From: Phallusia mammillata
Lineage: Eukaryota
DNA: 64,000 nt
Assembly (NCBI GenBank): GCA_965637545.1
Contig: OZ281501.1
Location: 14,074,001-14,138,000 of the forward strand
Direction: 5' to 3'
The notes beneath the pieces are model-generated. The model was not told the DNA's origin, ran no database searches, and saw nothing but the letters and a program-made list of their open reading frames with translations. Shown here in pieces: positions 9,388 to 30,797 of the stretch (its first letter is position 1; the number at the start of each line of letters is the position of its first letter). The translations under genes and the position numbers were made by a program.

Positions 9388-11888
9388 ATGCCAAATGGAA
9401 AGAGTAAACAATTTCGTCGTCGGAGAAAAGAGTCAACCGATGAAGAAGATGGTGGAGATGAAAATAATGAGGAAGAAGTCAGGTAGTTCTAAAACTTAAA
9501 AAAAATAATGTTGAATCCTACTTTGTGTGTCTTTACATTTTTAGTTCTGTGACTTTATTGATTTATACTTCTGCAAGGTACTCTCTGAGTAAATTTAATA
9601 GCATATTGTTTGGTATCCTGACAAACTAAGACCACAACCATTCCTATTTGTAAAACAATTGTATTCTTTGTAATAAAAAGTTCATGTTTCTGTAGTGATA
9701 TATTGGAAGCTACCAAGGAATTGCAGAAAGTTCGCAAACGCCAGATGGGAGTGAATGCTGCTTCACTCGCTACTGGAGTTAAACTCACAAAAGCAGATGA
9801 GATGGTTATGGATGTAAGTTTCAGTGACAAAAGTTTTGAAATTTGACAATGAACACAATCAATAAGCATTTACTGTTTTTATCAAAAAATATTTCGCTGT
9901 TTTCTTAACCCTTTGCTCATCTAGTTAGAAAACTATTTTGCTCTTACTTTTTTGAAAACTGTATAAAATATGTAGATTTTGTGATTCATGAAATTTTTCA
10001 GCAAAAAAATTGTTTAGAATGACCCATTCAAGGTGAAGACTGGAGGGCTAGTCAGTTTAAGAAATGTTAAGGATAGAAATCGAGATCGCACATATGAAGA
10101 TGTTGATCGAGATGTTACAAATTTGGGATCCACATTTTCAGTGGAAACAAACAGAAGAGATGAAGATTCTGAATTGTAAGATTTTGAAGTAAAGTGTTTT
10201 TTGTTTGAATTCCACAGCAAGTCATTCAAGGCCAAAACATTAAAAATGGATTTTTGGCATAAGTCAAATAAGTAATTGTGGCTGGTCTGTGCATAGGTAA
10301 TTACCAGCATATTTTCCTTTCTCAAGAACTGCCTATGTGGAAAGTGAACTGAAAAAGATTCGTGGAGAAAAAGAGGAAGGTAGTGAAGTCCAGAAATCTA
10401 AGATTAAAACAGCAGAAGATCAACTTTATCAACTGCCTGATCATTTAAAGGTGCTTTGATGTGATTTGATATGTAATTATGTACATTACTCTCGCACATA
10501 CATTTGCTTTACCAAATGTTTGGTATTTTAGCTTGCTGCTAAAGACCATTCAGAAGAAATGCTGTCTAATCAGATGCTTAGTGGAATACCAGAAATAGAT
10601 CTTGGAATTGAGTAAGTTTCATGCTTGTGGTTTAAAAAAGTCTAAGACCAAGTTACACTTTGTTAAAACATGTACACGGTCCATTAAACATCTAATGCAA
10701 ATTATCAAATCCTTGGTGTTTTTGGTCTGTGTGTTTAGAACCAAAATTAAAAACATAGAGCGTACTGAGGAAGCAAAACAAAAGTTGATCAAAGAAATGT
10801 CCCAAAAGAAGGAAAACAGAACCTCTTTTGTTCCAACCAACATGGCTGTCAACTATGTCCAACACAAAAGATGTAAGTTTCAATTCAGAATCTGACCACA
10901 CTATATTCCAACAAATTTACAAAAATAAATATATTTAAATGCATCTGCAGGTACCCCAAGAAAAAAAAATCTTCTTTAATGTTTTGTTACAAATTATTAT
11001 TTTAACCAAACATTTAATAGAGAAAAGGCTAAACTTTTGTATGACATATCTGTGATGATTTTTTTGCCGACATCTTTTATTCTAAAGTTTCAATGAATTC
11101 TGTTGCCTTAGTTATGCATAGCGAGAATTTCAAGCACAAAACAAAGGAACCTGAACCAGAGCGGGTACAACCTGTGGTGGGAGATGCAGGTTGGTGAAAT
11201 GCATTTTAAGTTTCAAGTGAACACTACATAAAGTATATATATTGCATTAACATTGTCTTTGAAACATGAAATGATTATGTGCACTGTCGAGGTTCTCTGT
11301 TGCTAAATTTTCCAGCATTTCAAAGTGTTTCTTTTATCTGATATCTGTATTGCAGCTAATTGTGGGGCACCCAGGCTTGCAGCAGTGGTGGCATTAGTAA
11401 ACTGTGCCTGTCCTTTATCCTTTCATTATCAAATGAATCTGCATGTCAGGATGGTACCAAAACTGTTTTGAAAGTTTAGTCAACCGCCAACCAGTGTCAT
11501 TAAATAGTGACTGGAGTAACTGGAAGCAAAGAACAAGAATAATTCAAGTCAGTACCAGGAATAGTCGAAAATATACCAAGAGCAAGAAAAAAGCAGATAA
11601 GTTAGCATATGAGCAACCGCATTCAGTGTTGAAGGCGACCTGTATTGAACGTCGGGACGTCAGTACAAAAATACGATTGCCAGAAGAGCTCTATAAAGTT
11701 GATGAGAAACCGTGTTTTGGCCATTCTCAACCTTAGGGGGAATTTTTGTGTGTGCAATAAATCAGAACATAACTTTGATCACTTTTGCAGAGAAAAAGCT
11801 TTCGAATGACGTACCTAAGCGAAAGGCTGGAACATCAACTGACGATTTTCACTACGAAAAATTTCGCAAAGCAAGTCGACGTTACTGA
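9388..11888 (+). CDS. C9orf78: Splicing factor C9orf78 (TLS1 homolog), 8 exons, 294 aa
   Basis: Exons 9388-9482, 9696-9813, 10018-10175, 10327-10450, 10532-10611, 10739-10872, 11112-11189, 11791-11888; total 885 nt. Hallmarks FRRRR, DPFKVKTGG, ETNRRDED, EEMLSNQMLSGIPEIDLGI, SFVPTNMAVNYVQH, TDDFHYEKF. Confidence 0.96.
11480..11736 (+). CDS. Candidate alternative terminal exon of C9orf78 (inside intron 7)
   Basis: Acceptor tttAG at 11478-11479 matches the phase-1 donor of exon 7. Frame is open for 85 codons to TAG at 11734-11736; AATAAA at 11756-11761. Confidence 0.35.
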
Positions 11889-12822
11889 CAACCCAGATTG
11901 AGGTAGTTACCAACGCAGTGACGTAATGCCTACGTGGATTTATGACGTCAATTATCGGAAGATTGGAACAACATGATAGGTTATTGCAAAGGACGGCGAA
12001 TGTCAACGTGGTGGATAATGGGTTCCTGATTTTACTGGTTTTAACGCTTTTAGGAGCCTCACGAAATCAAACGTTCGAGTGGAACGTTTCTACAAATGGT
12101 CATGTACGTTTTTTTAATGCAAAACCAACACAGCGATTTATTTTTACTCTAAAAGAGCCGGGTGAAACAAGCAACACCGCTGTTGGCGACCTTTTTGAAA
12201 AACGCAACATTTTTTGCACTGCCTTTTTATATTATACCCCAGTTCGTTACAAGTTGAGAAAGAGTCATTTGCAATGATCACTCTTTTTTCCGCTTCTCCT
12301 ATAAGCGTTAGCCGATTACATTACAGGTTGGCATTCGCCAGACCATTCATTGAGTTTGTTTGGTAGCGACTTAACATGACAAGACCATGCCTGGTAGTTC
12401 AGTGCAATCAAACATTTATTTAGTTTGGCCACAGAATTGCACATCTTGTCGCATTTTCATTAAAAAAAATGTTTAAATAAAACAGACAATTGCTCAAAAC
12501 CAATCACGGGTCAACGAAAATCCCGTTGGTGCTGTTTTTTGCGACCTAGAAGTTGCCGTCAAGTCTTGCCTTAACTTAACACAACACAAAGCTGTGCTTT
12601 TAGAGTTAGACTGTCCGGGAATCCAAGAAACTATGCCACTGAACAGATGTTAGCCTATTCTACGGGAAGAAGATTGTGATCCAGTAAAGAACAAAATAGT
12701 CAAGTTTGAGTGCAATACAATTCTTGTGATCGTTTTACCTGCTCAAAAAAGCACAATCGGAAAAAAAATTAACGTAACATCATTGCACATGAATGAACCT
12801 AAAATTAATAAACATCAAAGGT

Positions 12823-15800
12823 TTATCGATAAAATATCATAATCGTGGAATCGATGTCCTTCTGAGAATGAGCGAATCCAACTTGGTAAGTTTTGTTATT
12901 GGCAGTCCCACTATAACCGTTCCAGTCTAAAAAATAAATATCGTGTACAAATTGATGTTTCCCAGAGAGTATTGTGTATATTTACTGTTGTCACTTGATG
13001 CTAATGTCGCAATAACAACCTGTACATAAACTCACCGAGAAAATCGTTATATTCTTTCAAATGGCTCAACTTGTTTCGGACTCCGCCCACGCAAACGAAC
13101 CGACTGAAGGAATTCTCAACTCTGCAGATAAAGTGGTCGAGAAACAATGATTAGACTTACCCATCAAAACAAATTACACACCTCTATTACGAACATGGAT
13201 TAGCAGGCCTAAAGTCGTTTGTACAACAAACTATGCTTCTGACATACACTGTAAAATTTGTGAAATTCGCTTAACGCGCTTTATGCAGTCAAACATGGCG
13301 CTGTTTTTGTCGGCATTCTTAAGAGCTGTTTTGCAACGATTTAACAACGTTAAACTGACTTGACGGCTGGACATAAGGCGTAAACGCTTCCAGTTTCTCC
13401 AAAACTTCGAAGCTGAAGAAAACCAGTAGGCATTGGTCCGACGCTAGGTGGCAGCATATTCTCCACCACTGAAGCATCGCCAATCGTATACTCAACCGGA
13501 ACCGTGAGCGCTTGCTTCGAAACATCACATTCAGGACCTAAAGTACAAACAAATTAAAGTTTTAAACAGTTTCGATTCTAGTCAACCAGATCAAATGCTT
13601 GATACTAAAATGTTCTGAAATTGTCACTTACAGAAAACTTGTGTTTCCGACACGATCTCAAGGATTTTTTTCATTGCGTTTGTCATTTCTTGGTTAGATA
13701 ATTCACTTCCGTTTTTTCTGCAGAAAACATTGATAGCTGTTATTTAACTAAGAGATAACCAACTCCGTTTCGAAGCAAAAAATGCAATATACAATTAAGT
13801 GCTAAAATATATTTTTGCTGTAGCCTAGTGCCTAGTCGACTCGCGTGTACAACTTAAAAAGTAGAGTTTCAAATCAACCTACATGTAAATGTGGCTACAT
13901 ATAGGCCTACAGCTTAGCCAAGTTTTTGTTGCAAATTTTCCATAAAACTCTTTCAACAATTTTACACGTTTAAATACCGTAAGACCGTTTTTACAGTATA
14001 TGGATTTGAAGAAACTGACCTTGATAATAGTGTGTATCCCATATATAGGTTTGTTGGAGGTCCGTCAACTGCGTGCATATTATACTGATAACTGATCCCT
14101 TCGCTGCGTTGAACGAACAGTCGCGCCTCAGTAGAACCCCAGATCTACAATTCATAATGTAAGGTCAACAGGTAGACAAGGATATCACTTGACCACTCGT
14201 ACCTTAGCAGATGATATGATGAAGAATACATCACATATACTTGGAGTGGTCAAGCCATACTTGCATGTTGCGTCGTAAGTCAACACAAAGTTTTCATTGC
14301 TTAGACTTTCGTTATAATACTTCATTTGGCACAGGCTTGGTGTGTCAGAGTTTATCTAAAAACATATTTTTGGTAAAAAATAAATATTGGCTGCAACAGA
14401 AACTGATGAAGTATGGTTTAACATCTTAGAATGTGTCAAAGCGCTTACCTCTATGTTAAATAATCTGCTGCTGGAGTCGAAATTTCCCACTGCCAACAAA
14501 CCAAAAAACGGATATGATGTAGAGCTGGACCAAATAGAGTTGCTCAAAGGACATCTACACCAAGAAATCGGGTTTAAAATGTTAAAATTTTTGTCAAACA
14601 ATGTCACCGAAATGACGTTTTTGATTACGCTGTAAACAAATGACATGTCATATGTCACACTAAGCAAAAAATGTAACTGTTTGATAACTGCAAATAATTG
14701 GGTTTCAATGCAACCGTTTTTTAACTGATGATAGACCAACCCAAACGTGTTACAGTATCGCATTTACTTTCGTTGTTTTAACGTTAACCGTTTGGTTTGT
14801 ATGAAATCGTTTGGCCGAAACCAAATGGTCGTCGAATTGTTAACATGGCGAACAAACCTCAATTGGGTCAACCACTAGCTTTATTGTTGCCCTGTACCTG
14901 TAATCTTTTTTAAATGATAGGTCGTTGTTGTTGCATTTTGGGAGACTGACCTAAAAACAAATTGGTTTAGATTTAATATGCAAACAATGGACGTCTTTTT
15001 CTAAACCCAATATACAAACCCCCAATCCATATGGGCCAAACATTCCGCTACCGTTATCTGTGATTGTGTTCGTTATTTCATAACTATAAAAATAGAAGTT
15101 AGAAATTTCTGCCGTAACGCTAGGAAACGTTTCAACTAGTCCACCCAAAACTGGGTTTATGTCAGGAAGTCCATCTGAAACTAAAGTTAAAGGGTGTCAA
15201 ATTAACAGAAATTAACACTAAATAATACGAAGTGTGGATAAGGTTGGCGTTGGCGAGCATGGCTTTACGTCGTTTACGACCTCGAATGAAGTGGTTGGGC
15301 AACATTTTTGCATTGTAGGCTATCTGATTTTTATTACACACTAAGCTTTTCCACAACAAAAAAGATGTTGCATCAATCTAGCGACGTATCACAAACAAAT
15401 GCCATTGAAATTTAAAAAGCATTGAACCTGATGTAAAAATTGGTGTTTTAAAATTTTTGAAAACCGATATTAGCAATATTTATCTACCACGTCACAACAT
15501 ACACATGTCTTGGCCTGTGTTGGTGATTGAAAGAAGGATTTTTGCCATAGCTTCTTGTATTTCATTTTCATCAATTTGTTCCTTGGATAAGCTGAAATAG
15601 ATTAAGTTGTAACTTGCTTTCCTATGATCCGTGTCATGCAACAAGTACGTTTGTTTACACTACAGCATACAGTTGAGGTAAGACAACAATAGAAAAGACA
15701 AAGCAAGAAACTTCTAAACTTAATTTCCAGTAATGGAAATACTGAAGTGATTTGACACGAGTCCGACTTATGCCACCTTTTTCAAAGACTTGACTTGAGT

Positions 15801-18800
15801 TTTAGCTGTGAAAAGACATGATTTGGACTTGCAAACAAATGTAGTACATGTCAAGACCAACTATTTGCTTTTAAGCGCTTACTTTACTGTACAAATGATT
15901 TAGTTTAGTGCATGACGTTACTGTCCACGCTGTTTAAGGAGTGTCACTTGACATGTTGACTCTATGCAAATATAGGGAAGCAGTTGGTGGCTTAATCTCG
16001 CTGTGATGAAGTAGGGTCAATTTTATGGTAAAAAATGACGCGATAAACTATTCCAAAAAAATACCCATATCCAAACCTTAAAACTTCCTTTCAATAATTT
16101 TTTATGACTTGCCTCAAACCCCAAACGACTTGCCTTGAGACTCGAACCCCTTTTGACTTGGGGCTCAACTTATAGGACGTCCCAGTCCAAACCTGTCAAT
16201 TTCCTAACAGATCACAATTGTTTGTTGGTTTGATTTCGAACTTTGGTGACAGGCAACACCTAAATGCGTTCTGCTCTCACAATGTCTCTGCTGTGGAAGT
16301 GCCTGTTTTATTGCAAGTCTTAAACCATTTTTTATTATAATCTTTTTGAATTGGTGACTTCAATTTGGTTTGACCCATCATGGTTAACTGGGTTGCAGCA
16401 ATGTCACTTAAGTTCTTGCTTAAGGAAACACAAGTTGCTAAGTGAATATGAGTCAATTGTGCTGATTACTCAGGCATCTGTGCAACATTTACTAACAGGT
16501 TGGGTGTGACTTACCTAGAAAAGAGTGAATACCCAAACATCTGATTAGACAATATCGGAGAACTTCTTAGTTCACTGCCGTAATAACTGGCTTCTGGTAA
16601 AACAATATACTCTGGAAAGTTTTCTGTTGATAGCCAATCCTAAAAAGGGAATGTTTTTAGACACACATAAATTGTTTGTAGTTAAGTTTTAGTCTTACCA
16701 CAGGGTTTATAACCACAAACAAAACATCACATATGCTCTTTGTGGAGACCCCAAATCTACAAAGGGCGTGATATTGCATTTTATAGTTTCCATGTGTAAG
16801 ATTTCCTTGGAAATTATTGTATGGTTCCTTAATAATTCTATAAGATGTCACCTTGACAAATCCACAAAAATTGTTAGTATCTCTGGAGTGTACATATTTA
16901 AGAAATAAATGTGCAAAACAGCTTTAATATGGTGGTTCACAACCTGAATTTCTCACTTAACAGTTCTTCATTCCTTCCAAACAGACTACAAAATAGATGC
17001 TAAACCAAACAAAGATCACTTGAAATAGTTGTTTTATGAACTTTACAGGTCTTATTCCCAGAGCTAAAGTGTCTGATTACAAACCACATGAACAAACTAA
17101 AGTAAATTCTTTCCCTAAAGTTTTAAAATTTTCCTTTGGGAGGAGTTCTTTTCTGGTAAGGAACCACTGCTGTAACTAAACAAATTTTTCTAGACAAGTA
17201 TAGTTAAATCATGTAAATCAAGAATTTGCTCACTCTCATAGAAAAATCTGACAAAACAATGTCAGATACATCCCCCACTGCCAAGATTCCAATAAATGGA
17301 TGAGACTTTCTGCTTGACCATATGGTATTTGTCTCTTTACAACTGAGAAAAACACTTGTGAAGAATCAAAACTTTCCAAATACAAAACAGTGACACACTT
17401 ACCTGTAACTTGCATCATATTCAATAGGCCCAAAATCACAGCTTCCTGCATACAGTTGAATCTGAATACAAATGTTTTATCAATGTTTAAACATTTGTGA
17501 TCATAAAGGCCACCAAGAAAAATCATTGGTTCAACAAAAGCAAACGTACCAATTATTTTTGTACAAATTATTCGTTTCAACATTGGCATGAAATTTGAAA
17601 GTTTAAATTGAATATGAACATGTTTAAAATTAAAAACCACTTCATTAAAAAAAATTGTTTACAAACATACAAAAGCCCCTCTAGGAGTGTACATTCCACT
17701 TTCTTTGTCTGTGATGTAGTTATTTTTATTCTCATAAGAATAATCATAAAAACCAGGAATTTCTGAGGTAACTTCATTGGCCCTTGATGCCAAGTTGTTT
17801 AGTGTTGTTTGAACATCAGGATATATGTCTACATAAATAACATAGCAGAAAACAGAAAGATTATTCAGACATGCAAATTTAAACGTGAATTCAAATCAAA
17901 GAAAGGTTGCTTGCACAGCTGCCTTAAAATGATTCCGTTTGCCCATGTTGCTTACAGCTATTTAGTCAATTTTCAACCTATTGGTCCTAGCTTAAACTTT
18001 ACAACAAAAAGTGTTTTATCCAATCTGCAGCAGCAAACCAATAAATGTTTTCACAAAAACAAATTTAGAAGCTGTTTAACCTAGTGCAAAATTCAAAATA
18101 AACTTACAATTGGAAGGTTGTAGTGGGTATTTATTGACAAAGAGGTTTTTCAGATTTCCACCATTTTCAGCTAAAAACTTATTATTGGTTTTGTATTCTA
18201 GAAAACTTGCTTTACTGCTTTCCTCAACTGGCACATTGTTTTCTACATGACGTATCATCACATCACTAGCCTGTTCAAAGATCAAGAAAAATTAAACACA
18301 CAACCCCACCATGACAATATGTGTAGAAAGAGTTTGTAAAAATACACTTACTTGAAGGTCATGATAGGCATTACTTTTGAAATCAGATCTTGTACATGTG
18401 ACTATACTTCCAAACACATTTTCATTCACCCAGTTTTGATAATCTGTGTAAATACAATGTTAAAAACGTTCTTGATATGGTTAAGCTTGGTTTGCCAACG
18501 GGAATTCTGCTTTTTATATGCATCAAGTAAAAAACTTTTATTGGTCCCATGCCACTATTTAAATAGGCCCAATGAAATGAGCCACCAACGTTGTTGCAAA
18601 GCAGAAACAAAGTTTAAACTGAAAGTTAAATTGTAACAACAAATATTTGTTTCAATTCTTCAGCCGAGTGTCAATAACCGAAATTGCCCAACAATGCAAA
18701 ATTGTATCATTGTTTTCAAACTCTGAACATGGCTTTATTTAACACTTGCTAATGTTTAATACAGTAAAAAAGTTGCTTCCATGTAAGTTACAAAAACGTT

Positions 18801-21095
18801 TTACCAGCCTAGGCCAACAAACAAACAAACAACAACAATTAAACTACCTGTTGTAAGTTGATTGTGGTTGGGAAAGAACCAGGCGTCGCCATAGTTAACT
18901 TCGTCAAAGCCATTTTCGTTTACAGTAGCAACCAAAGTCCAACCTCCAGCTTCCAAATCGCAATAAACCTAAAAAACAAATCATAAAATTGGACATGGTG
19001 AAAAATGTTACTATTTCAATCTCTATTTCTACCGTGATTAAATGTTTTTTATTTTGAAAATGCATATACGCTGGAGAACTGATTAAAAGTAAAACAACTG
19101 TGAAATGTTTTGCAGACTGAAATTTCAAATTTGCTAAAGTTGTTGCTTGGAAAATACCGCCAAGATAAAAGTACCGACTCTCACCTCATACGGATGAGTG
19201 CTAGGTTGAATGACGTATTTGCCGTTGACGGAGAAACCTGATTGCGCAAGTTCAAAGCAGGATCTCGCAGGAGTTGCGATTGTTCTGGATGTTATGACAG
19301 CCTCCTCGCAAGAGGAAACATCTTAAAAATTAGTTAACGTGTTGATAAGTAACATCATTGATTGTTTATGTGCCCATCAGTAAAAACAGATTTTACCTGT
19401 GTTGTTTATTTTCTTGTCCATTTCCTAAAACGTAAAAACGTGAATATTTAAAGAAATTTAGGTTAGTAAGTGAAAACCTTAGGTTAAAAAACATGAAATA
19501 AATAAGAATTTTAGTTGACTCTGATGGTATGCAGAAAAAAGATTTTCAACAGCAAATATTATGGTATATGCTATACTGCCCTTTCTTAAGAAACCGATTT
19601 AGTTAAAAAGAACAACATATTAGTTGGTCTTTTACGCAATTTTAAGGCAACATTTTTTTGAAATGTTAACTTAACAAAAGTATAAGTATGTTGCAAACTA
19701 TAGTACACACATTTTCTACCTTTAAGTAATTATTCGGCCACACTTACATTGTGCACCGTGACTGTGTAACTTACTTGCCGCTAATTCCCTTAATACTTTT
19801 ATAACAAAAATACAGTTGTTTAAAGAATCTTCCTAAATCTTCCTAAAAGGTTCCTAACGCTTACTCACCAAATTAACTACCAGTATCCATCCATTCAAAC
19901 CAGCACAGCCAATCGTAATCAGTAAGATGATGCAAGTTAGGGCTAAGGTAGATTTCTCGACACATCTACTTACATGCTTTGGCTTCACGGTCGTTGTCAC
20001 AAATGCATCTATACAAGATGCTTTTTTTTATATTACCTCGATCTGATATCAAACCTATAGTTTGCTCGAATTAGACCAGTGGTTCTTAACCTTTTTTCCT
20101 TACTGCACCGCTTTCGAATCACCGACCAATTTTCGCACCCCCCTGGGTTTTTGTATTTATATAGAATAGACCTAACCAACATTAATGATTCAGCATCCCC
20201 GCACCCCCAAGACTATAAATTATATTTTGACCATAATCCATGGAGACTTTTTAGGTTTCTGATCACACTTTTTTGCTCGGTGATCATTTGGTTTTGCTGT
20301 TTGCGAGGCTATTGCAAGTAACACGCTCTTAAAAATGACTGCACTAACAACTGCAGTAGTTAAAAACAACTAAGATCAACAAAACTACCATTTGGCTGAT
20401 TTTCGCCAACTTGCTTAGTTTTTGCTTCGCCATTATCTTCGTCCTGGTAAGACGGTTCTTGAGTGTAAGGATTTCTCGTGGTCACATAATTTGGGGAGAC
20501 TTCGTCTGAAACATGTTTGCTAGTATACATTGCATTCCATTGTTGCAAAAACAACACGTCAATGTAATACCTCGTTCAGTTAACTCTTGTCTACGTTGAT
20601 TTTCTATTTTCTTTTCTTTCAATTTTTGCATTGCGTAAGCAGAACGACCTAGGATAAAAAAGGTGAAAAACAACCAATACTGTCACAAGCGTAAAAAGTT
20701 TGAGAATTACTTAATAATAAACCGTTTTTTTTTTAAAAACAAAACAAGGTAGACTTACTGTATTCATCGTGATATACTCTTCCTGGATTGTAAGGATTTC
20801 TTTCCACATATCTGTATTGCTGTTCTAATTCTGTTTGAAAGATGAAATATATAGACTTGAGACTTTTCCATGTTTTTATGTGCACCTGCCTTATCTGTTT
20901 CGGAATACTCTCAAACACTCGCAATTAAAAGCAGTTTCTAATAAAGCCTTAAGAGTTACGTTGTAATTATACATATAGGCCTAGCTATAGTGTACCTCCC
21001 GGGTTCCTTTGCGGTTCCACGAGTTTTCTTTCAGGAGTTCTTGAATTCTTAAAGTAGAAATTGTTGCCGTATTGATCACTCCTCGATTGATACAT
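12823..21095 (-). CDS. Type II membrane intelectin-like protein with a split fibrinogen-related domain and two inserted ~230-aa modules; 24 exons, ~920 aa
   Basis: Exons 5'->3': 21095-20996, 20830-20759, 20648-20571, 20505-20389, 20008-19865, 19321-19185, 18968-18848, 18443-18352, 18270-18108, 17828-17671, 17461-17403, 17342-17234, 16851-16699, 16639-16515, 15591-15503, 15174-15020, 14950-14898, 14554-14449, 14355-14203, 14144-14020, 13717-13632, 13537-13360, 13121-13036, 12926-12823. All GT-AG; 2763 nt open. Intelectin matches: RSC, YCDLEAGGWTLVATVNEN, NWVNENVFGS, SDFKSNAYHDLQ, KYP, VPVEYTIGDA, GFLQLRSF, ALC, CVGG, DWNGY, IMIFYR-stop. Start codon and the TM-exon donor are the least certain points. 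Confidence 0.88.
15729..15830. mobile_element. Fragment of a GACTT/GAGTC-rich non-autonomous DNA element; related copy reversed at ~59560-59648
   Basis: cagtaatgg...gtccgactta...caaagacttgacttgagt...agctgtgaaaag matches the reverse complement of cttttcacagct...actcaagtcaagtc...taagtcggac...ccattactg near 59580-59648. Confidence 0.6.
20077..20215. mobile_element. One-ended hAT MITE fragment
   Basis: Starts CAGTGGTTCTTAACC after aattagac. No matching right TIR or TSD found; right boundary approximate. Confidence 0.5.
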
Positions 21096-24077: not shown

Positions 24078-27000
24078 TCATCCTGCTGCTTCAACGGCAG
24101 TTCCGTCAGCCGTAGCATCGTTTTGTTCCACTGGTTTTGACTCTACCGCTGTGGTTTCTTCAGCTGGTTTGCCATTCTCCTTTGGTGGATCATTTTCAGT
24201 CGGAGCTGCTACAAAAAAGAAGAAAAATCAAAAATTGTACTATCTGTATTATCACTAAAAAGACAGTAGAACTAAATATGAAGTCACAACAACAAAGTTT
24301 GATAAATACCGGTAGATGGCGTAAAGAGCGCAGTGATTTGAATTGAGACTGGGATGGGGTTAGTAACTAAATATAGGGTTAGAAACTAAGTTTATAAGTT
24401 GGCTTCATTGCTATTTTTATTATAACACCTCACCCCAACCCTACTAGCCTTAACCGTCAGCTTTTTCACACCATTTGGGTTTTTGAATTTCTTTAATGCT
24501 CTTTGCGCCATCTATCGGTATTTAGCAATCTTTTCTGTTGTGAGTTCTCACGTTAGTAGAATTTCCTAAAATGATTTCTTGGTAGAAAGTGCAAGCCTTT
24601 TTTGTCATGTATTCTTAACGTTAAGACATTTGCTGTTTACCGTAACTCTTAAGGTGTCAAAACGCAACTGGGGTCAACTTGTCAAAAGAAAAAAATGATA
24701 CTTTGTACTTTGTTATTTTATGATAAAAAATTATCGTCTGTAAATCGTTTTAGAGGTGTTTTGTCCGTCCAACTCTAAAACGACTTTTATACAGTAAATG
24801 TACGCAAAGTCAGGTTGGTTACGTACTGACAATGATTTGTTTTTGCTCAACTTCCTAAAGCAGCGACGATATAGGCAAAATATTGTTTTACTGAGGAAGT
24901 CATTACGGATGCAGTCTCGAACATTGTTATGATGTGCAAGCACACCCTTAATGGTGAGGTAATAGTTTTAAACTGGCCGTAGGAGTATATGTTTACCCAG
25001 GGTCAAAGTAAATACAAGGAATATAAATATGACCTTAATCTGAACTTATTTCCTAAAGCATCACGAAAATCCTAATCGAAATGGCAAAGTTATGTGTTAT
25101 GATATTTCCGCACTTTTTGACATTTTTGGTTGTCACGCAAAGACGTAACAGTTTTTAATCTGCGTCAAGTGGTTTTGCTAGCTTTGCTATCAAAACGATT
25201 TTAAGTTCCAGAGTCCTCTATCTAAAAAAAAAACTAATTGTCTAATTTGAAGTAACTGAAATTTTTTTTTTTTATTATTCCATTTCAATTCTGATTAAAG
25301 GTCGCTAATGCATACGTTTTTAATCCTCTATCATGTGCCTCGATGGAAAATTTAGGAAATGCAATCTACCCAGTAGTGGGATTCAGATTTTTTTTGTCAG
25401 CCGGTTCTATCACAAAAGTCATATTTTTCAGCCGGTTCTGTTACAAAAAGTTTCCATTGACAGTAACCAGTAATGCTAACCGGTTCGCTGATCTCGTAAA
25501 ATTTCGTGAGCCGGTTCTATAGAATCGGTGCAAACCGGCTGAATCCCACCACTGAATCTACCTTCACGATGTCTCAATTCACACACTAAACATACCCCCC
25601 CCCCAAATTTCCCATGGTTGAAAACCTAGTGTAATGCATTAACTTATAGTACACCACATTTTTGTCCTAATCCACTTCTTAACTGTATGCATTTTTTTCA
25701 ATTAGTTTTTACACTCTTGGTTTTGGTATTTAACCTGACTTATCAACAATGCCATTTCGACAATTTTGGAATAGTTGCAATGACCGATTGCATTAAGCTT
25801 CTTCTGAAACCTCTTAAAAAAGTTTAAGAGTGCAAGTTTTAAGTGATGCTTTCAAATAGTTTGCCTACCTCCATTGGTTTCCTGCGTTGGTTCTTGAACC
25901 GGTTCTTGAGCTGGCTCTTGTCCACCCTCCTCAGCAGGAGCAGCTTCCTCCGCCTTCTCGGCTTTCTTGTCACCTTAACAAACATACCTATTTTAGTTCA
26001 TTGTATGTTACAACTACTTATTGAATGCAGTACTCGTGTGGTGAACAAATGACCCTTACTGATCATCTAACACAGTTTTCAACAACGGACCATTTGATCT
26101 TTTAGACATAGAGGTTATCATGTTAAGGGTATTTAGAGTTTTGTGGTTTTCGGGTCTATTAACTTTATTACTTGGTAAATGTTTGGCCCTGCAATGGACA
26201 TGTAGGCGTACTTTTATTGCAATCAAGATTAAAAAATAGAAAAAATACAACAAAAAGTTGTACAGCTGGTAACGTTAAAATATGACGCAGCTTCGTTCGA
26301 AACAAATTTAAACACTGAGATAAGGTTGATTAAAGATAATTTCAACAAAAATGTCTACCTTCAGTTGTTTTCTCCGGCTTCGACTTTTTGGTGCTAAAAA
26401 TTTTAAAAACTTTTCTAAACGACTTGCTGGAAAGTTTTCCCTTCTTCTTTTTCTCTTTCTTGTCTTCTGCTGGTTGTGAGCTCTCGCCCTGCTCGGGAGC
26501 TGCCTCCTTTGCCGCCTCTTCTTCTGCTGGAGCATCAGCAGCAGGAGTTTCTTCCGCTGGCTTCTCCTCGGCAGTCTCAGGCTCCTATAAATACAAGTGG
26601 ATTCGGTTCATTTTATGTAGCTGATTTGTAACATGCTTAAATGTATAGTGAAACAGGATTGCTACTGTTAGGCATCAAAGTATGATTGCTCCTAAGACAA
26701 ATGCAGTAACACATTACGGATTGACACATAAGTTCAAACGCTTTCATAAAAACGGACATTGACATTGTCAAACACTTAACTCATTAAAATGTCTGCCGCC
26801 ATTTAGGCTTGAAGTTGCTGCGTGGTAAACGAAGTAGATTTATTTGCAAAAAATGTCGGTTGAATGCAAACGGACGCGGGAATGACAAATACACTTGGCA
26901 CGGCCAACTATAACGAAGTCTACGTCGTGTTATTCACATTTACATTTTGCTGAGCACACTGGATAGCTCGTCAGCTTGCCTATCACGTGTAAAACTGACG

Positions 27001-30000
27001 TCAACACATGTACTCGGCGGTTACCCACAATGCCACAGGCCCGCGCGTTTGGTTCGCATGGTTCGAAAGCCGTCGGTTTGACATGAGGTAATTTGCGCCA
27101 GAGAGGTATGGAAGAATACTACGAAATTATGCGGAACTGCATTATTCGGTGGCATCGCGTCACCAGCTGTCGTTGAGGGAAGTTTTTGTTTGTGCCGCTT
27201 TATGGACCCCGTCGTTGCAGTTGCACTTTTACAATTGCTCGCCCATGTATATTCACAACACGCCAATAAACCTAACATTCGTAAACGTTTCGTTTAGGGC
27301 GTTTTTACACTTTGTTTTTCATTGCTTGTACTGGTTCGTATTAATCTTAGTATCCTTAAGCCCTTTGCGGAAGTCATGTTCCCTTAAACTTAATAAACTA
27401 AAAAGTCAGGTTTTAAAAGACTTAGATAATAAGAAAAAGATAATTTTGCCAACCTTGGTCTCAGTTTGTTCCGGTTCCTGTGCTGGAGTTTCCTCGGGGG
27501 TTTCCACTGGGGCTTCTGTAAAACAAAAAGTACGTGATATGAAAAATCAATGCGACTAAACCATCCAGGGGACAAAGTGACATTAAAACCATGATCCTAT
27601 GCAAAAAACTGTTTACGGTTTAATGTATTTTTCTGCTCACAAATCTTTAAAGTAAAACGTCCCGATTAGACCTCTATGACTAATAGAAACTGGATTTGGT
27701 TTTAGAATGCGGAAGAAGGCTTCACAACAGCAATCGATTTATGTAGCCCGCGGATTTGAGCTTTCGTTCGTTTCCTTGCAAATCACGTGACCGTTTCTGG
27801 GATTTGCGCAATCCTAAAATTTTGCAGCCGTCTGGACTTCCGCGTTTCCAACTTTTGCAAATAACAAGGAAGTTACGACTTTTACAAATGCCACCCGATG
27901 TCCATTATAACTTTTCTCGTGTGCGAATAACCTTCCTATCAATTGAACATGAAATACGCAACAACTGCAAATCGAGGTGCATGTTTAAATCCCACCGCAG
28001 GAATCAATTATATCATATTTTTTGCTCTTTTTCTATGGTTCGGGTGAGACACTTAAACATATAAAGACGACCGAGTGATTTATTGCAGAGAACAACTGTT
28101 TTACTACAGACCGAAAATAACTTCCATTAACGCATTGTTGTGTCAATGAAAATGGCTACATTAGGACACCATCGACGGTTATAACGAATGTAAGACTTGA
28201 ATTTCCTCATTGGAAAGACATAATGTTGCTTCTTTGAAATGTATTGCTGTCTTTTTTAAAAGTTATTTTAGAACAATAATATGAAACAAGTGTGTGTGAC
28301 TTGTTGAAGGACAAACCCATGGAAACACGAAGGTCAGTTTTGTCGTAACATTGCAAAACGTTCTTATAATTATGTTTCTCTTACCGGGTTGGTCTCCCAT
28401 TGCTGTTTGGTTTGATAAATCAAATACAAATGTAAAAACAAGCAAAAAAGTTGCACCTTTCTACCAAATAGACAAAATGAATTTTGAAATTTAAAAACTA
28501 TTACCAATGCCTCGCACTTCGATAAAAACAAAACACTTATCTATCGACCCATCTAAAAACGCGCACCCAGCCAAACTATTCAAACACTATTTCGCAAACC
28601 TGCTTTCTAACCTGCGTACAACAGATTCTCAACTGTAGTGATGCGTCGTTGAACGAAATACAACTCAACCTTTAGCATGTATTTCTAAACAACCATTATC
28701 TCATATCTCACACCCTCACACCCTCACATCAATAACTTATGTCAGCGTTCATGGTCATATACCGAGTGATGAACAACCGCTTTTAGCGTCAGTTTGCAAA
28801 CGATTTACAACGCGTAAGCAAGCGTCATGTCGACATTTCATAGCAACAAAATAGAAAAAACAGCGAGACTGCACGCAGGTCTGTCTCAACGACGTCAAAG
28901 CGCTACTTGCCAAAGTAACCGGTTTTATTTGCGCCAGGAGCAACATTGACACTTTCGTTAAACTAACATATCGTAAAATTTCCTAAACCTTACTAATATT
29001 GTGTGCGGCGTACTACTATATTGCAAAGAACATATTATGTTGGTTGCTATGCCATGTTGTATGACAAAAAACTTTGCGTCGATATATCTTCTTTAAAATT
29101 GCGTCAATATATCTTCACCGTTCAGATCGTTCTAATAATTACGCCTCGTTATAACCCTAACCGACGTATTTTCGGCATTGTGCCACGTTTAAATGCGAAT
29201 CACAAACCTGAACTTGCCTAGAAATAAATCTACAAGCAAACCCTTTTATATCAGAGCGTTTAAATTCGGAAATAATAACACCAATTGTGAAAGGTTTCTA
29301 AACGCGTTGTTCACCAAGCATTCTAGCATCCTAGTATCTAACAAGCCACAATAACCGGTTATGTGCTAAACAAAACCATAACAAACTGTTTGCAAGCGCG
29401 AGGGTGTGTTTCCATCAAAACTGCTGCCGCAACCCTGCCTCCGTCCAACAAAACGTTCTGTGTGATACTAAACTCAGGAAGTAGCAAATAGCTGCTGATA
29501 TTGCCTGCCACGCCCTGACGGCTTGCGTAATGCATAAACAACTCACATCTGCACTAACACAGTCGAACAGTGGGCGGTATTACCATTCAAACCCTACACG
29601 ATCCTATGCCACAAACTAAAACTATTACATCATCCTGAATGTGTGCCCTTTTTTATCCGAGCCCGGCAGAGGATTTGGCATTTATTGATTCGCGAGCCGA
29701 ACTTTAGCAAGCAGAGCCTCTTGTTCACGAGATATCACGAAATCTGGATGCCTACTTCGCTATAGTCCATAGTCTACCCCGCTAAATGCAACCCATGAAT
29801 CAAACTCGTTGGGCAAACAAACCAAACAGCGCCACCATCGATATCTATGTTTCTATTATAAACATTCACACAGTACCTTGAAGTCTTACGCTTCCATATT
29901 TGAATTTGAACATTATTTCCACCACCAACACTTTGAATCCAGTTTTTACATTCACTACATCTTATTTCCGGGTTAAACGTACATACAAACTGCGGAGGCT

Positions 30001-30544
30001 TTCAAGAAATCCTTTCCATTTAGCACAGACCGAAACGTGACGTAAGTCAGACAAAACGCTCAGACAATTCAAAGATAACCCGCCCAGATATATTTAGATT
30101 TTTCAAATTTATAAATCTCAACCAACCTTCTTGTTTTTGTTGCGCTGTTTCTCCCATTTCTTCGGCCTTGGGTTCTTCTACTTCGGACGTTTGTGGTTCA
30201 GCTTCAGTCGTTTGTGGTTCCTCAGTCGTTTGTGGTTCTTCAGTAGCTTGTGGTTCAGCTTCAGTTACTTGTGTTTCAGGTTCTGTCTTTTCTGGTTCGT
30301 CCTGAGTCGTTTGTGGTTCAGGGTCCTGAACTTGCGGCTCGGGTTCGCTTGCTTCTTGAGTCTCCTCTACAACTTCAGCAGTTTGTGGTTCTTCAGTCGT
30401 TTGTGGTTCTGGCACTGGAGGTTCAGGTTCTGGTGCTGGTGGTTCTTCACTCTGGACTTCTTGTACTGGTTCCTCAACTGGCTCTTGCGCGGGACTTTCT
30501 TCCTGTGCCGGCTCAGGCATTTGAACTTCTTCTTGTTCAGACAT
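24078..30544 (-). CDS. Acidic Glu/Pro/Ala-rich disordered protein with a MARCKS-like basic effector segment; 5 exons, 313 aa
   Basis: Exons 30544-30127, 27515-27454, 26584-26359, 25973-25869, 24208-24078; total 942 nt, GT-AG, frame preserved. Basic/aromatic island KKEKKKKGKLSSKSFRKVFKIFSTKKSK in exon 3; EPQTTE repeats in exon 1. Confidence 0.85.
25371..25554. mobile_element. hAT MITE, 184 bp
   Basis: TIRs cagtagtgggattcag / ctgaatcccaccactg (15/16). TSD aatctacc at 25363-25370 and 25555-25562. Confidence 0.92.
28385..28400 (-). CDS. Candidate alternative first coding exon (MGDQP) of the MARCKS-like gene
   Basis: ATG GGA GAC CAA CCC G followed by consensus donor gtaaga. Phase 1 matches the acceptor at 27515, giving a 179-aa isoform. 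Confidence 0.4.
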
Positions 30545-30797
30545 CGCAATTATCGCGTCACTATTAACACTCTTTGTTCTACGTCTTAAATGGCGCCCTG
30601 TGTGACGAAACAAAGCACGTCGATTGTTTGTCGACTGACGACTTTGCGCGATAAGGGTGACGCTTTGCACGCAGATTACGTGAAACAACGAAACACAAAG
30701 AACCGCCTTGGCTCGTCTAGAGCGTCAAAGTTCGAAAATCGTTAGTGCAAATACAATCACCGAAAACGCGCCATTTCGTCATCCCTGTTGAACAGTG

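Follow-up and report, generated by a model that had tools for sequence, protein, structure and literature searches.

Intelectins have been studied as compact, secreted, calcium-dependent lectins for microbial sugars. Here, we describe a gene of the ascidian Phallusia mammillata in which an intelectin domain is divided into two halves, with two copies of another module lying between them. The gene is on the minus strand of a 64,000-nucleotide stretch of DNA (contig OZ281501.1 of assembly GCA_965637545.1, positions 14,074,001 to 14,138,000), which we call the window; all coordinates below are positions within it. Read along the minus strand, the intelectin N-half is followed by modules A and B, of six exons each, and then by the intelectin C-half.

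The gene is transcribed as one unit and carries tandem nested modules; taken as a whole, the most probable reading is an ascidian split intelectin whose product would be a type II membrane protein engaged in recognition. If so, the intelectin fold has here become a scaffold for one or, in the window gene, two foreign-looking surface domains, having lost its own sugar site. The locus would then be a natural case that combines domain nesting, the shuffling of an exon cassette, and duplication within a gene. Should these proteins indeed be recognition receptors, ascidians would have an expanded receptor family that has gone unstudied.

The split gene and its transcripts

By sequence, both halves of an intelectin (X-type lectin) domain can be matched, and in the expected order. 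The first N-half exon supported by RNA (18848-18968) matches residues 45-84 of Xenopus XEEL (4wmo; E 4e-4), and also human intelectin-1. The last N-half exon (18108-18270) matches XEEL residues 122-169 (E 2.8e-5), with human intelectin-1 and the lamprey lectin matching as well. The first C-half exon (13360-13537) matches residues 224-271 of the lamprey lectin (7e1e) weakly (E 0.28), and shows 39-49% identity to the C-halves of ascidian relatives (tblastn). The original prediction, made from the letters of the window alone, placed the split at KYPLQPSN / CPEC; these ordered matches to XEEL, human intelectin-1, and the lamprey lectin bear it out. Pfam Fibrinogen_C (PF00147) finds no match in single window exons, and the relatives P0005 and P0006 pass its gathering threshold on about 45 N-terminal residues only.

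The point of insertion can be placed on human intelectin-1, numbered according to the 4wmq alignment. The N-half stops at K193 or thereabouts, and the C-half restarts close to a conserved Cys (~199). A short loop has therefore given way to the insert: the surface loop equivalent to residues ~194-198, just before this Cys.

Evidence that the parts belong to one gene comes from RNA-derived contigs of four public runs (X1, X5, X6, and X17, from four studies), aligned to 13340-19330. The labelling of the runs as RNA is a guess; since their contigs skip 16 introns with GT..AG ends, these represent spliced RNA. A single long contig in each of X1, X5, and X6 links the exons from ~19139 through 13360, and shorter X17 contigs carry the same junctions. 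The three junctions that bound the modules (18108>17828, 15503>15180, and 13632>13537) are crossed by contigs in all four runs, as are the junctions within both modules. GT..AG ends are found at every intron of the gene. The junction 18443/18848, which is not printed in the contig junction table, follows from sequence, depth profile, and frame. At the other end, 30 unaligned letters that all four runs have at 13360 are those of 13092-13121, and so place the exon that follows. The last intron (13036 to 12926) is predicted from its GT-AG ends, from homology, and from the frame. Once joined, the 18 exons are open over 2121 nucleotides, up to ..STIMIFYR and a stop. The window is AT-rich (~36% G+C) and the introns are short, as in an animal genome.

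An artefact, in which two genes or a misassembly were joined by the reader, is refuted by contigs of four runs that cross all junctions without other letters, and we give it practically no weight. Thus, the claim that the halves and the two modules make one gene is upheld, and all 14 motifs quoted in its support lie where they were placed, on the minus strand. RNA contigs carry the splice path from 19139 to 13360; the upstream exon that was first proposed, 19304-19185, has no contig in these runs. Module A has the 231 amino acids assigned to it (17828-15503). Module B starts at acceptor 15180 rather than 15174, and hence has 228 amino acids, not 226. Each module has six exons, once the small exons 17403-17461 and 14898-14950 are counted. 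The two acceptor AGs at the start of module B are six bases apart; the contigs use 15180, and splicing at 15174 would remove two residues.

Might each functional product have just a single module, with A and B as alternative cassettes, skipped or mutually exclusive, that deliver variant receptors? Both cassettes begin and end in phase 1, which means that skipping either keeps the frame. Every database relative with a split intelectin has one module, where the window gene has two, and contigs lose rare isoforms. However, A and B stand together on the long contigs of X1, X5, and X6, and X17 has the A-to-B junction. No skipping joint is listed among the junctions of the RNA contigs; nor is a direct joint from 18108 to 13537, the contigs carrying both halves with A and B. 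We regard one-module products as improbable.

The 5' end is less simple. The long contigs of X1, X5, and X6 begin at 19122-19139, in an exon (19033-19139) that lies in the intron between 19185 and 18968; X17 shares the junction 19033>18968. The only in-frame ATG of this exon (19065-19063) would start a product of 717 amino acids, which has neither signal peptide nor anchor. Depth is 0 over 19140-19330 in four of the four runs, a region that includes the predicted exon 19304-19185. That exon joins 18968 in frame, and homologues support it (tblastn). The predicted tail exon (20530-20389) and transmembrane exon (20008-19869) join it, also in frame, to give a protein of 840 amino acids with a type II layout. 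In full length, the product would sit in the membrane as a type II protein, its recognition head facing outward. An N-terminal signal peptide, such as secreted intelectins have, is found neither in the homology model nor at the RNA-supported start. The alternative 5' exon may mark an internal promoter; it may also reflect the loss of minor isoforms, to which assembled contigs are prone.

Two observations on the RNA stand apart. In X17, depth over 13360-15143 (31.7) is about five times that of the contigs over module A and the N-half (6.3-6.8 over 15180-19139); a bias toward the 3' end or one more internal start could account for this. The X1 contig continues for 2066 nucleotides past 13360, ~190 of which are coding (window ~10950-12822, minus strand). 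This overhang suggests a 3' untranslated region of ~1.9 kb, or read-through into the next gene.

The module family and its exon cassette

Modules A and B are 33% identical over 227 residues (blastp, E 4e-28), with four Cys aligned; the tandem pairing and the four shared Cys, first read from motifs, are thereby substantiated. Their exons are of nearly the same sizes (158/59/109/153/125/89 nucleotides in A, 161/53/106/153/125/86 in B). The start phases are 1,0,2,0,0,2 in both, and each cassette enters and exits in phase 1. An internal repeat of the intelectin domain was considered and rejected, as blastp of A and B against the two intelectin halves finds nothing.

The module had been called unrecognised. 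This remains true of named families: Pfam gives no match for single window exons and only scattered single hits, at E 0.02 or worse, for 34 modules, and a PHROG search of eight modules gives no family. It is no longer true of relatives, since the module belongs to an ascidian family that has bacterial and viral-contig members. A hidden Markov model (HMM) built from database sequences only (the window's own protein is absent from the collections searched) scores 164 bits against A (profile positions 3-225) and 162 bits against B (8-225). Both modules keep the invariant positions of the family.

To find the family, an exon-pair profile was scored against 1.84 billion representative proteins. Its matches were ascidian proteins and six short repetitive hits (P0001, P0007, P0009, P0014, P0018, and P0019). 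The latter were rejected: they match only ~20 residues repeatedly and are missed by the full-module HMM, and a Pfam scan of five showed four to be MBG-repeat proteins or unrelated in other ways. Word-seeded searches, for which the module profile and P0012 served as queries, returned Ciona and Phallusia proteins only. In the fetched proteins, the full-module HMM counts 55 copies. Where the protein is intelectin-like (at least eight loci in Ciona, and also in Phallusia, Clavelina, and Styela), one copy is embedded in it. Ciona LOC104266555 and its Phallusia homologue have seven or eight in tandem, and Clavelina has two or three beside CUB or Sushi-Trypsin-VWD domains. All of the ascidian proteins that bear the module are annotated as "uncharacterized". 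A profile from modules standing in a row (row-type) gives A 94 bits and B 108 bits.

These genes share more than sequence. Mapped exactly on its locus, Ciona LOC104266555 has in each module the same six-exon cassette as the window gene (~152/56/97/156/128/80-95 nucleotides, phases 1,0,2,0,0,2), with phase-1 linker exons between some modules. The Ciona split intelectin P0024 has the exon layout of the window gene. In the canonical Ciona intelectin-1b, a single 590-nucleotide exon spans the insertion point. The recurrence of one cassette in LOC104266555, P0024, and the window gene, in the latter two at a point where intelectin-1b has no intron, therefore marks the six-exon phase-1 cassette, on the evidence of gene structure, as a mobile unit.

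The window gene belongs to a lineage-specific family of split intelectins, whose members hold a module in the surface loop of the intelectin domain. Here, the six-exon phase-1 cassette has undergone tandem duplication, giving nested modules of 231 and 228 amino acids. In a tree of the modules, A, B, and Phallusia P0013 form a group (80/80) within the clade of intelectin-embedded modules (94/98). This fits the duplication of a module already embedded, rather than a second capture.

As for novelty, the architecture had been proposed to be undescribed. A full-text literature search found no paper on the split-intelectin layout or on the Ciona loci; the one-module form, however, already stands, unnamed, in annotations of Ciona, Styela, Clavelina, and Phallusia. 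What is new is the tandem nested pair: the known one-module relatives are unnamed, and the window gene adds a second module.

If a module has been inserted in a loop, the two halves should still fold together. This was examined with AlphaFold, which was given residues 95-605 of P0005, a Ciona relative with one module, and an alignment of 49 rows. The resulting model has a predicted local distance difference test score (pLDDT) of 84.1 and a predicted template modelling score (pTM) of 0.76. Against XEEL, human intelectin-1, and the lamprey lectin, it gives Z 33.5-33.8 and a root-mean-square deviation (rmsd) of 2.4-2.6. These alignments take in 265-268 of 277-281 residues, run across model residues 1-511, and leave out the module (~168-392). 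In the P0005 model, the halves form a complete intelectin domain, with the module looping out. The expectation that they would fold into one domain is thus favored in a one-module relative (Z 33.8), which stood in for the two-module ectodomain of the window gene. Each module would enter and leave its loop at neighboring points, so that two in series could sit side by side on it.

Modelled alone, the module gives a pLDDT of 90.8 and a pTM of 0.90. The model is a beta-sandwich, with two short N-terminal helices, twelve strands, and a C-terminal helix. Among solved structures it resembles the beta-supersandwich domains of GH94, GH65, GH116, and GH15 enzymes and of galactose mutarotase, over ~170 of 229 residues, with Z 8-9.7 (a range that, per the tool, indicates a common arrangement) and rmsd 3.4-3.8. 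Foldseek against solved structures gives E 5e-4 at best and template modelling (TM) scores of at most 0.34; TM in the Atlas is ~0.5. An ESM Atlas feature search with the module returned no usable hit. By model comparison, solved structures assign the module to a fold class only. Predicted viral structures come closer: A0A8S0HZG8 matches with TM 0.80 (E 7.7e-7), and two uncultured phage proteins with ~0.6.

Given these matches, the module might be catalytic or carbohydrate-processing, rather than binding. The best solved-structure matches are, after all, glycoside phosphorylase/hydrolase and galactose mutarotase-like domains, and DGGxDMYDxGN, an acidic motif that is conserved, might serve as a metal site or an active site. 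But the matches are weak (Z and TM as above), and the enzyme regions matched are, as we take them to be, accessory beta-sandwich domains and not catalytic ones. Further, the motif is degenerate in A and B, and bacterial and phage copies sit among Ig-like, fn3, and HYR domains and in a tail-fibre locus. A catalytic module is thus very unlikely.

The motif DGGxDMYDxGN, shared by the row-type ascidian modules, was searched as a degenerate DNA pattern in viral contigs and bacterial genomes. Matches were found in 66 viral contigs and in at least 120 genomes of bacteria, for the most part Bacteroidota, Verrucomicrobiota, and Planctomycetota; our own estimate from the information content of the pattern puts the chance expectation below 1 per collection. 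When the ascidian HMM was run on open reading frames around the motif sites, it found full-domain matches, with viral scores up to 80 bits and 118 bacterial frames matched. These matches cover the C-terminal two thirds, outside the motif. Conversely, a viral-only HMM gives the ascidian row-type modules 77-86 bits per copy, and the window protein 31 bits, best in the C-terminal half of B. The motif itself is degenerate in intelectin-embedded modules generally: A has ..TDKESGMYTPRG.. and B has ..TDNGSGMFGPYG.. in its place. A tblastn search of the module against 50,697 phage records gave no match.

In bacteria, the module is carried by giant proteins that also have Ig-like, HYR, fn3, subtilase, and type IX secretion system (T9SS) tail domains; the module stretch of these proteins has no Pfam family. 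One viral contig encodes a 354-residue protein that has the module at its C-terminal end and an N-terminus common to neighboring proteins; the locus also has a tail fibre protein of 905 residues. By profile and motif, one module family takes in ascidian proteins, giant surface proteins of bacteria, and products of uncultured viral contigs.

Other features of these relatives were seen. On viral contig L046 (4490-11300), at a locus that includes a tail fibre protein, five neighbors match overlapping PHROG families N-terminally and diverge downstream; one of them ends in the module. Two or three tandem copies, ~290-490 residues apart, occur in L090 (an Aureispira metagenome-assembled genome), L072, L075, L122, and L129; tandem copies in bacterial giant proteins echo the ascidian multi-module proteins. 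Full intelectin-like domains are also found at the C-terminus of bacterial and metagenome proteins (P0032 and P0084-P0094; for example, Lujinxingia and Myxococcales), so both parts of the ascidian architecture have prokaryotic counterparts.

Through the module, a gene family of chordates is linked to surface proteins of bacteria and phages, and the question arises whether the module has a horizontal origin. In a quick unrooted tree, all 20 ascidian modules form one group (approximate likelihood ratio test, SH-aLRT, 96.6), which adjoins 25 viral sequences and stands apart from the bacterial ones; as a guide to the origin of the module, this position is only a lead. One history, which we hold tentatively and think somewhat doubtful, is that an ascidian ancestor gained the module from a virus or bacterium. 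As a phase-1 exon cassette, it would have spread among ascidian genes and entered an intelectin, whose sugar site would then have decayed. The module would have become the recognition surface in a diversifying family of membrane receptors, and would here be doubled for valency or a second specificity.

Sugar site and a possible recognition role

Human intelectin-1 has eight carbohydrate-binding positions: 243, 244, 260, 262, 263, 274, 288, and 297 (PMC9262044). Aligned to these, the window protein has E, T, F, R, F, S, W, and F; only W288 is kept, and Y297 has become F. In the Ciona split family, positions 260, 262, and 263 are D, Q, and Y/F, and N260, E262, and E274 are absent from the entire split intelectin family. 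Equivalents of the structural-calcium residues E87, N88, G97, D98, and D282 are kept in the window protein. Judged by alignment, the canonical calcium/sugar ligand site is lost, in the window gene and across the split family.

What, then, might the protein bind with? Because the canonical site is lost, binding would most likely be through the two modules or through a new surface, and a pair of modules on the same loop would raise the valency or bring a second specificity. We infer that the protein serves in recognition outside the cell, and that the modules are what it binds with.

The same loss, of course, might mean that the gene is drifting out of use, with transcripts from an internal promoter encoding an unanchored, unsecreted fragment that carries a dead sugar site. 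Contigs that start at 19122-19139, and so bypass the transmembrane and first intelectin exons, would be expected of such a gene, as would the replacement of seven of eight sugar-binding residues and the long tree branches that lead to A and B. Decay is, however, hard to reconcile with an open frame of 2.1 kb, in 18 exons with intact splice sites, or with two modules that retain the invariant positions of their family and score 162-164 bits. Further, the loss of the sugar site is common to the whole split family, and is thus old and tolerated. We consider a gene in decay unlikely.

A functional, anchored two-module receptor, and with it the innate-immune or adhesion role that was first suggested, must itself be weighed against several observations. 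The RNA contigs bypass the predicted tail, transmembrane, and first intelectin exons, and support the unanchored product of 717 amino acids. The fold was examined on P0005, a one-module relative of 31% identity, rather than on the two-module protein. The family motif is degenerate in the window's modules, and the 31 bits that they draw from the viral-only HMM are a weak match. Finally, the bacterial and viral sequences were picked by one motif, which makes the tree that joins them to the ascidian modules a biased as well as an unrooted sample.

Features of the window and comparison with known systems

Table 1. Exons and modules of the split-intelectin gene, with the evidence for each
Feature	Position	Strand	Evidence
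Predicted first coding exon, Tyr-rich cytoplasmic tail	20389..20530	-	Open frame; phase-1 donor fits transmembrane exon; no RNA evidence
Predicted transmembrane exon (..LALTCIILLITIGCAGLNGWILVV..)	19869..20008	-	Frame and splice sites to 19304; no RNA evidence
Predicted exon, start of intelectin domain (..ARSCFELAQSGF..)	19185..19304	-	tblastn with Ciona, Phallusia, Styela relatives; splice sites; frame
Alternative 5' exon, first of RNA contigs	19033..19139	-	Junction 19033>18968 in four runs
Intelectin N-half exon, YCD..GGW motif	18848..18968	-	RNA junctions; matches to XEEL 4wmo and human intelectin-1
Intelectin N-half, second exon	18352..18443	-	RNA junction at 18352 and depth; acceptor 18443 from sequence; frame; tblastn
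Intelectin N-half, last exon, ending ..KYPLQPSN in phase 1	18108..18270	-	RNA; XEEL match
Module A, 231 amino acids, six exons	15503..17828	-	RNA junctions; GT-AG; HMM 164 bits
Module A exons	17671-17828, 17403-17461, 17234-17342, 16699-16851, 16515-16639, 15503-15591	-	RNA contigs
Module B, 228 amino acids, six exons	13632..15180	-	RNA junctions; HMM 162 bits; 33% identity to A
Module B exons	15020-15180, 14898-14950, 14449-14554, 14203-14355, 14020-14144, 13632-13717	-	RNA contigs
Intelectin C-half, first exon (CPEC..VPVEYTIGDA..), starts in phase 1	13360..13537	-	RNA; weak match to lamprey 7e1e; ascidian relatives
Intelectin C-half, second exon	13036..13121	-	Loose letters of four runs at 13360; tblastn
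Last exon, ..STIMIFYR and stop	12823..12926	-	GT-AG ends; frame; homology; no reads aligned

The window also holds a separate gene (24081-30724, minus strand) with long, acidic, low-complexity exons rich in Pro, Glu, and Thr. These lie at 30724-30050, 26584-26345, 25974-25855, and 24227-24081; one has a basic Lys/Ser/Phe patch. For this gene, Pfam yields a sub-threshold low-complexity hit only.

Comparison with described proteins may proceed from the scaffold to the module. With vertebrate intelectins (human intelectin-1, 4wmq/4wmy; XEEL, 4wmo; lamprey lectin, 7e1e), the window gene shares both domain halves in order, the YCD..GGW motif, W288, the ..FYR end, and several structural-calcium positions. 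It differs in having ~460 residues nested in one loop, in the replacement of positions 243, 244, 260, 262, 263, and 274, and in a predicted type II anchor where vertebrate intelectins have a signal peptide. The canonical Ciona intelectin-1b has far fewer exons, and no intron at the insertion site.

The one-module split intelectins (Ciona LOC100185179, LOC100183495, and LOC100182049, and those of Phallusia, Clavelina, and Styela) are closer. They have the same insertion site and the same degenerate motif and, in P0024, the same exon layout. The Tyr-rich tail and transmembrane segment of Ciona P0005 resemble the type II layout predicted here. These proteins differ in having one module and not two, and are only 31-36% identical.

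The secreted ascidian multi-module proteins (Ciona LOC104266555 with seven modules, its Phallusia homologue, and those of Clavelina) belong to the same domain family, and LOC104266555 uses the same six-exon phase-1 cassette. In these proteins, however, the modules stand in a row and are not nested in another fold; they keep DGGxDMYDxGN and SNxGADG, and are without most of the Cys of the embedded type. Module proteins of bacterial surfaces and viral contigs are joined to these by full-length profile matches in both directions, and by the TM of 0.80 to A0A8S0HZG8. They have different partner domains, and none was seen with an intelectin domain. The likeness to GH65, GH94, GH116, GH15, and galactose mutarotase is that of a general two-sheet beta-sandwich over ~170 residues, in proteins that have no sequence similarity to the module.

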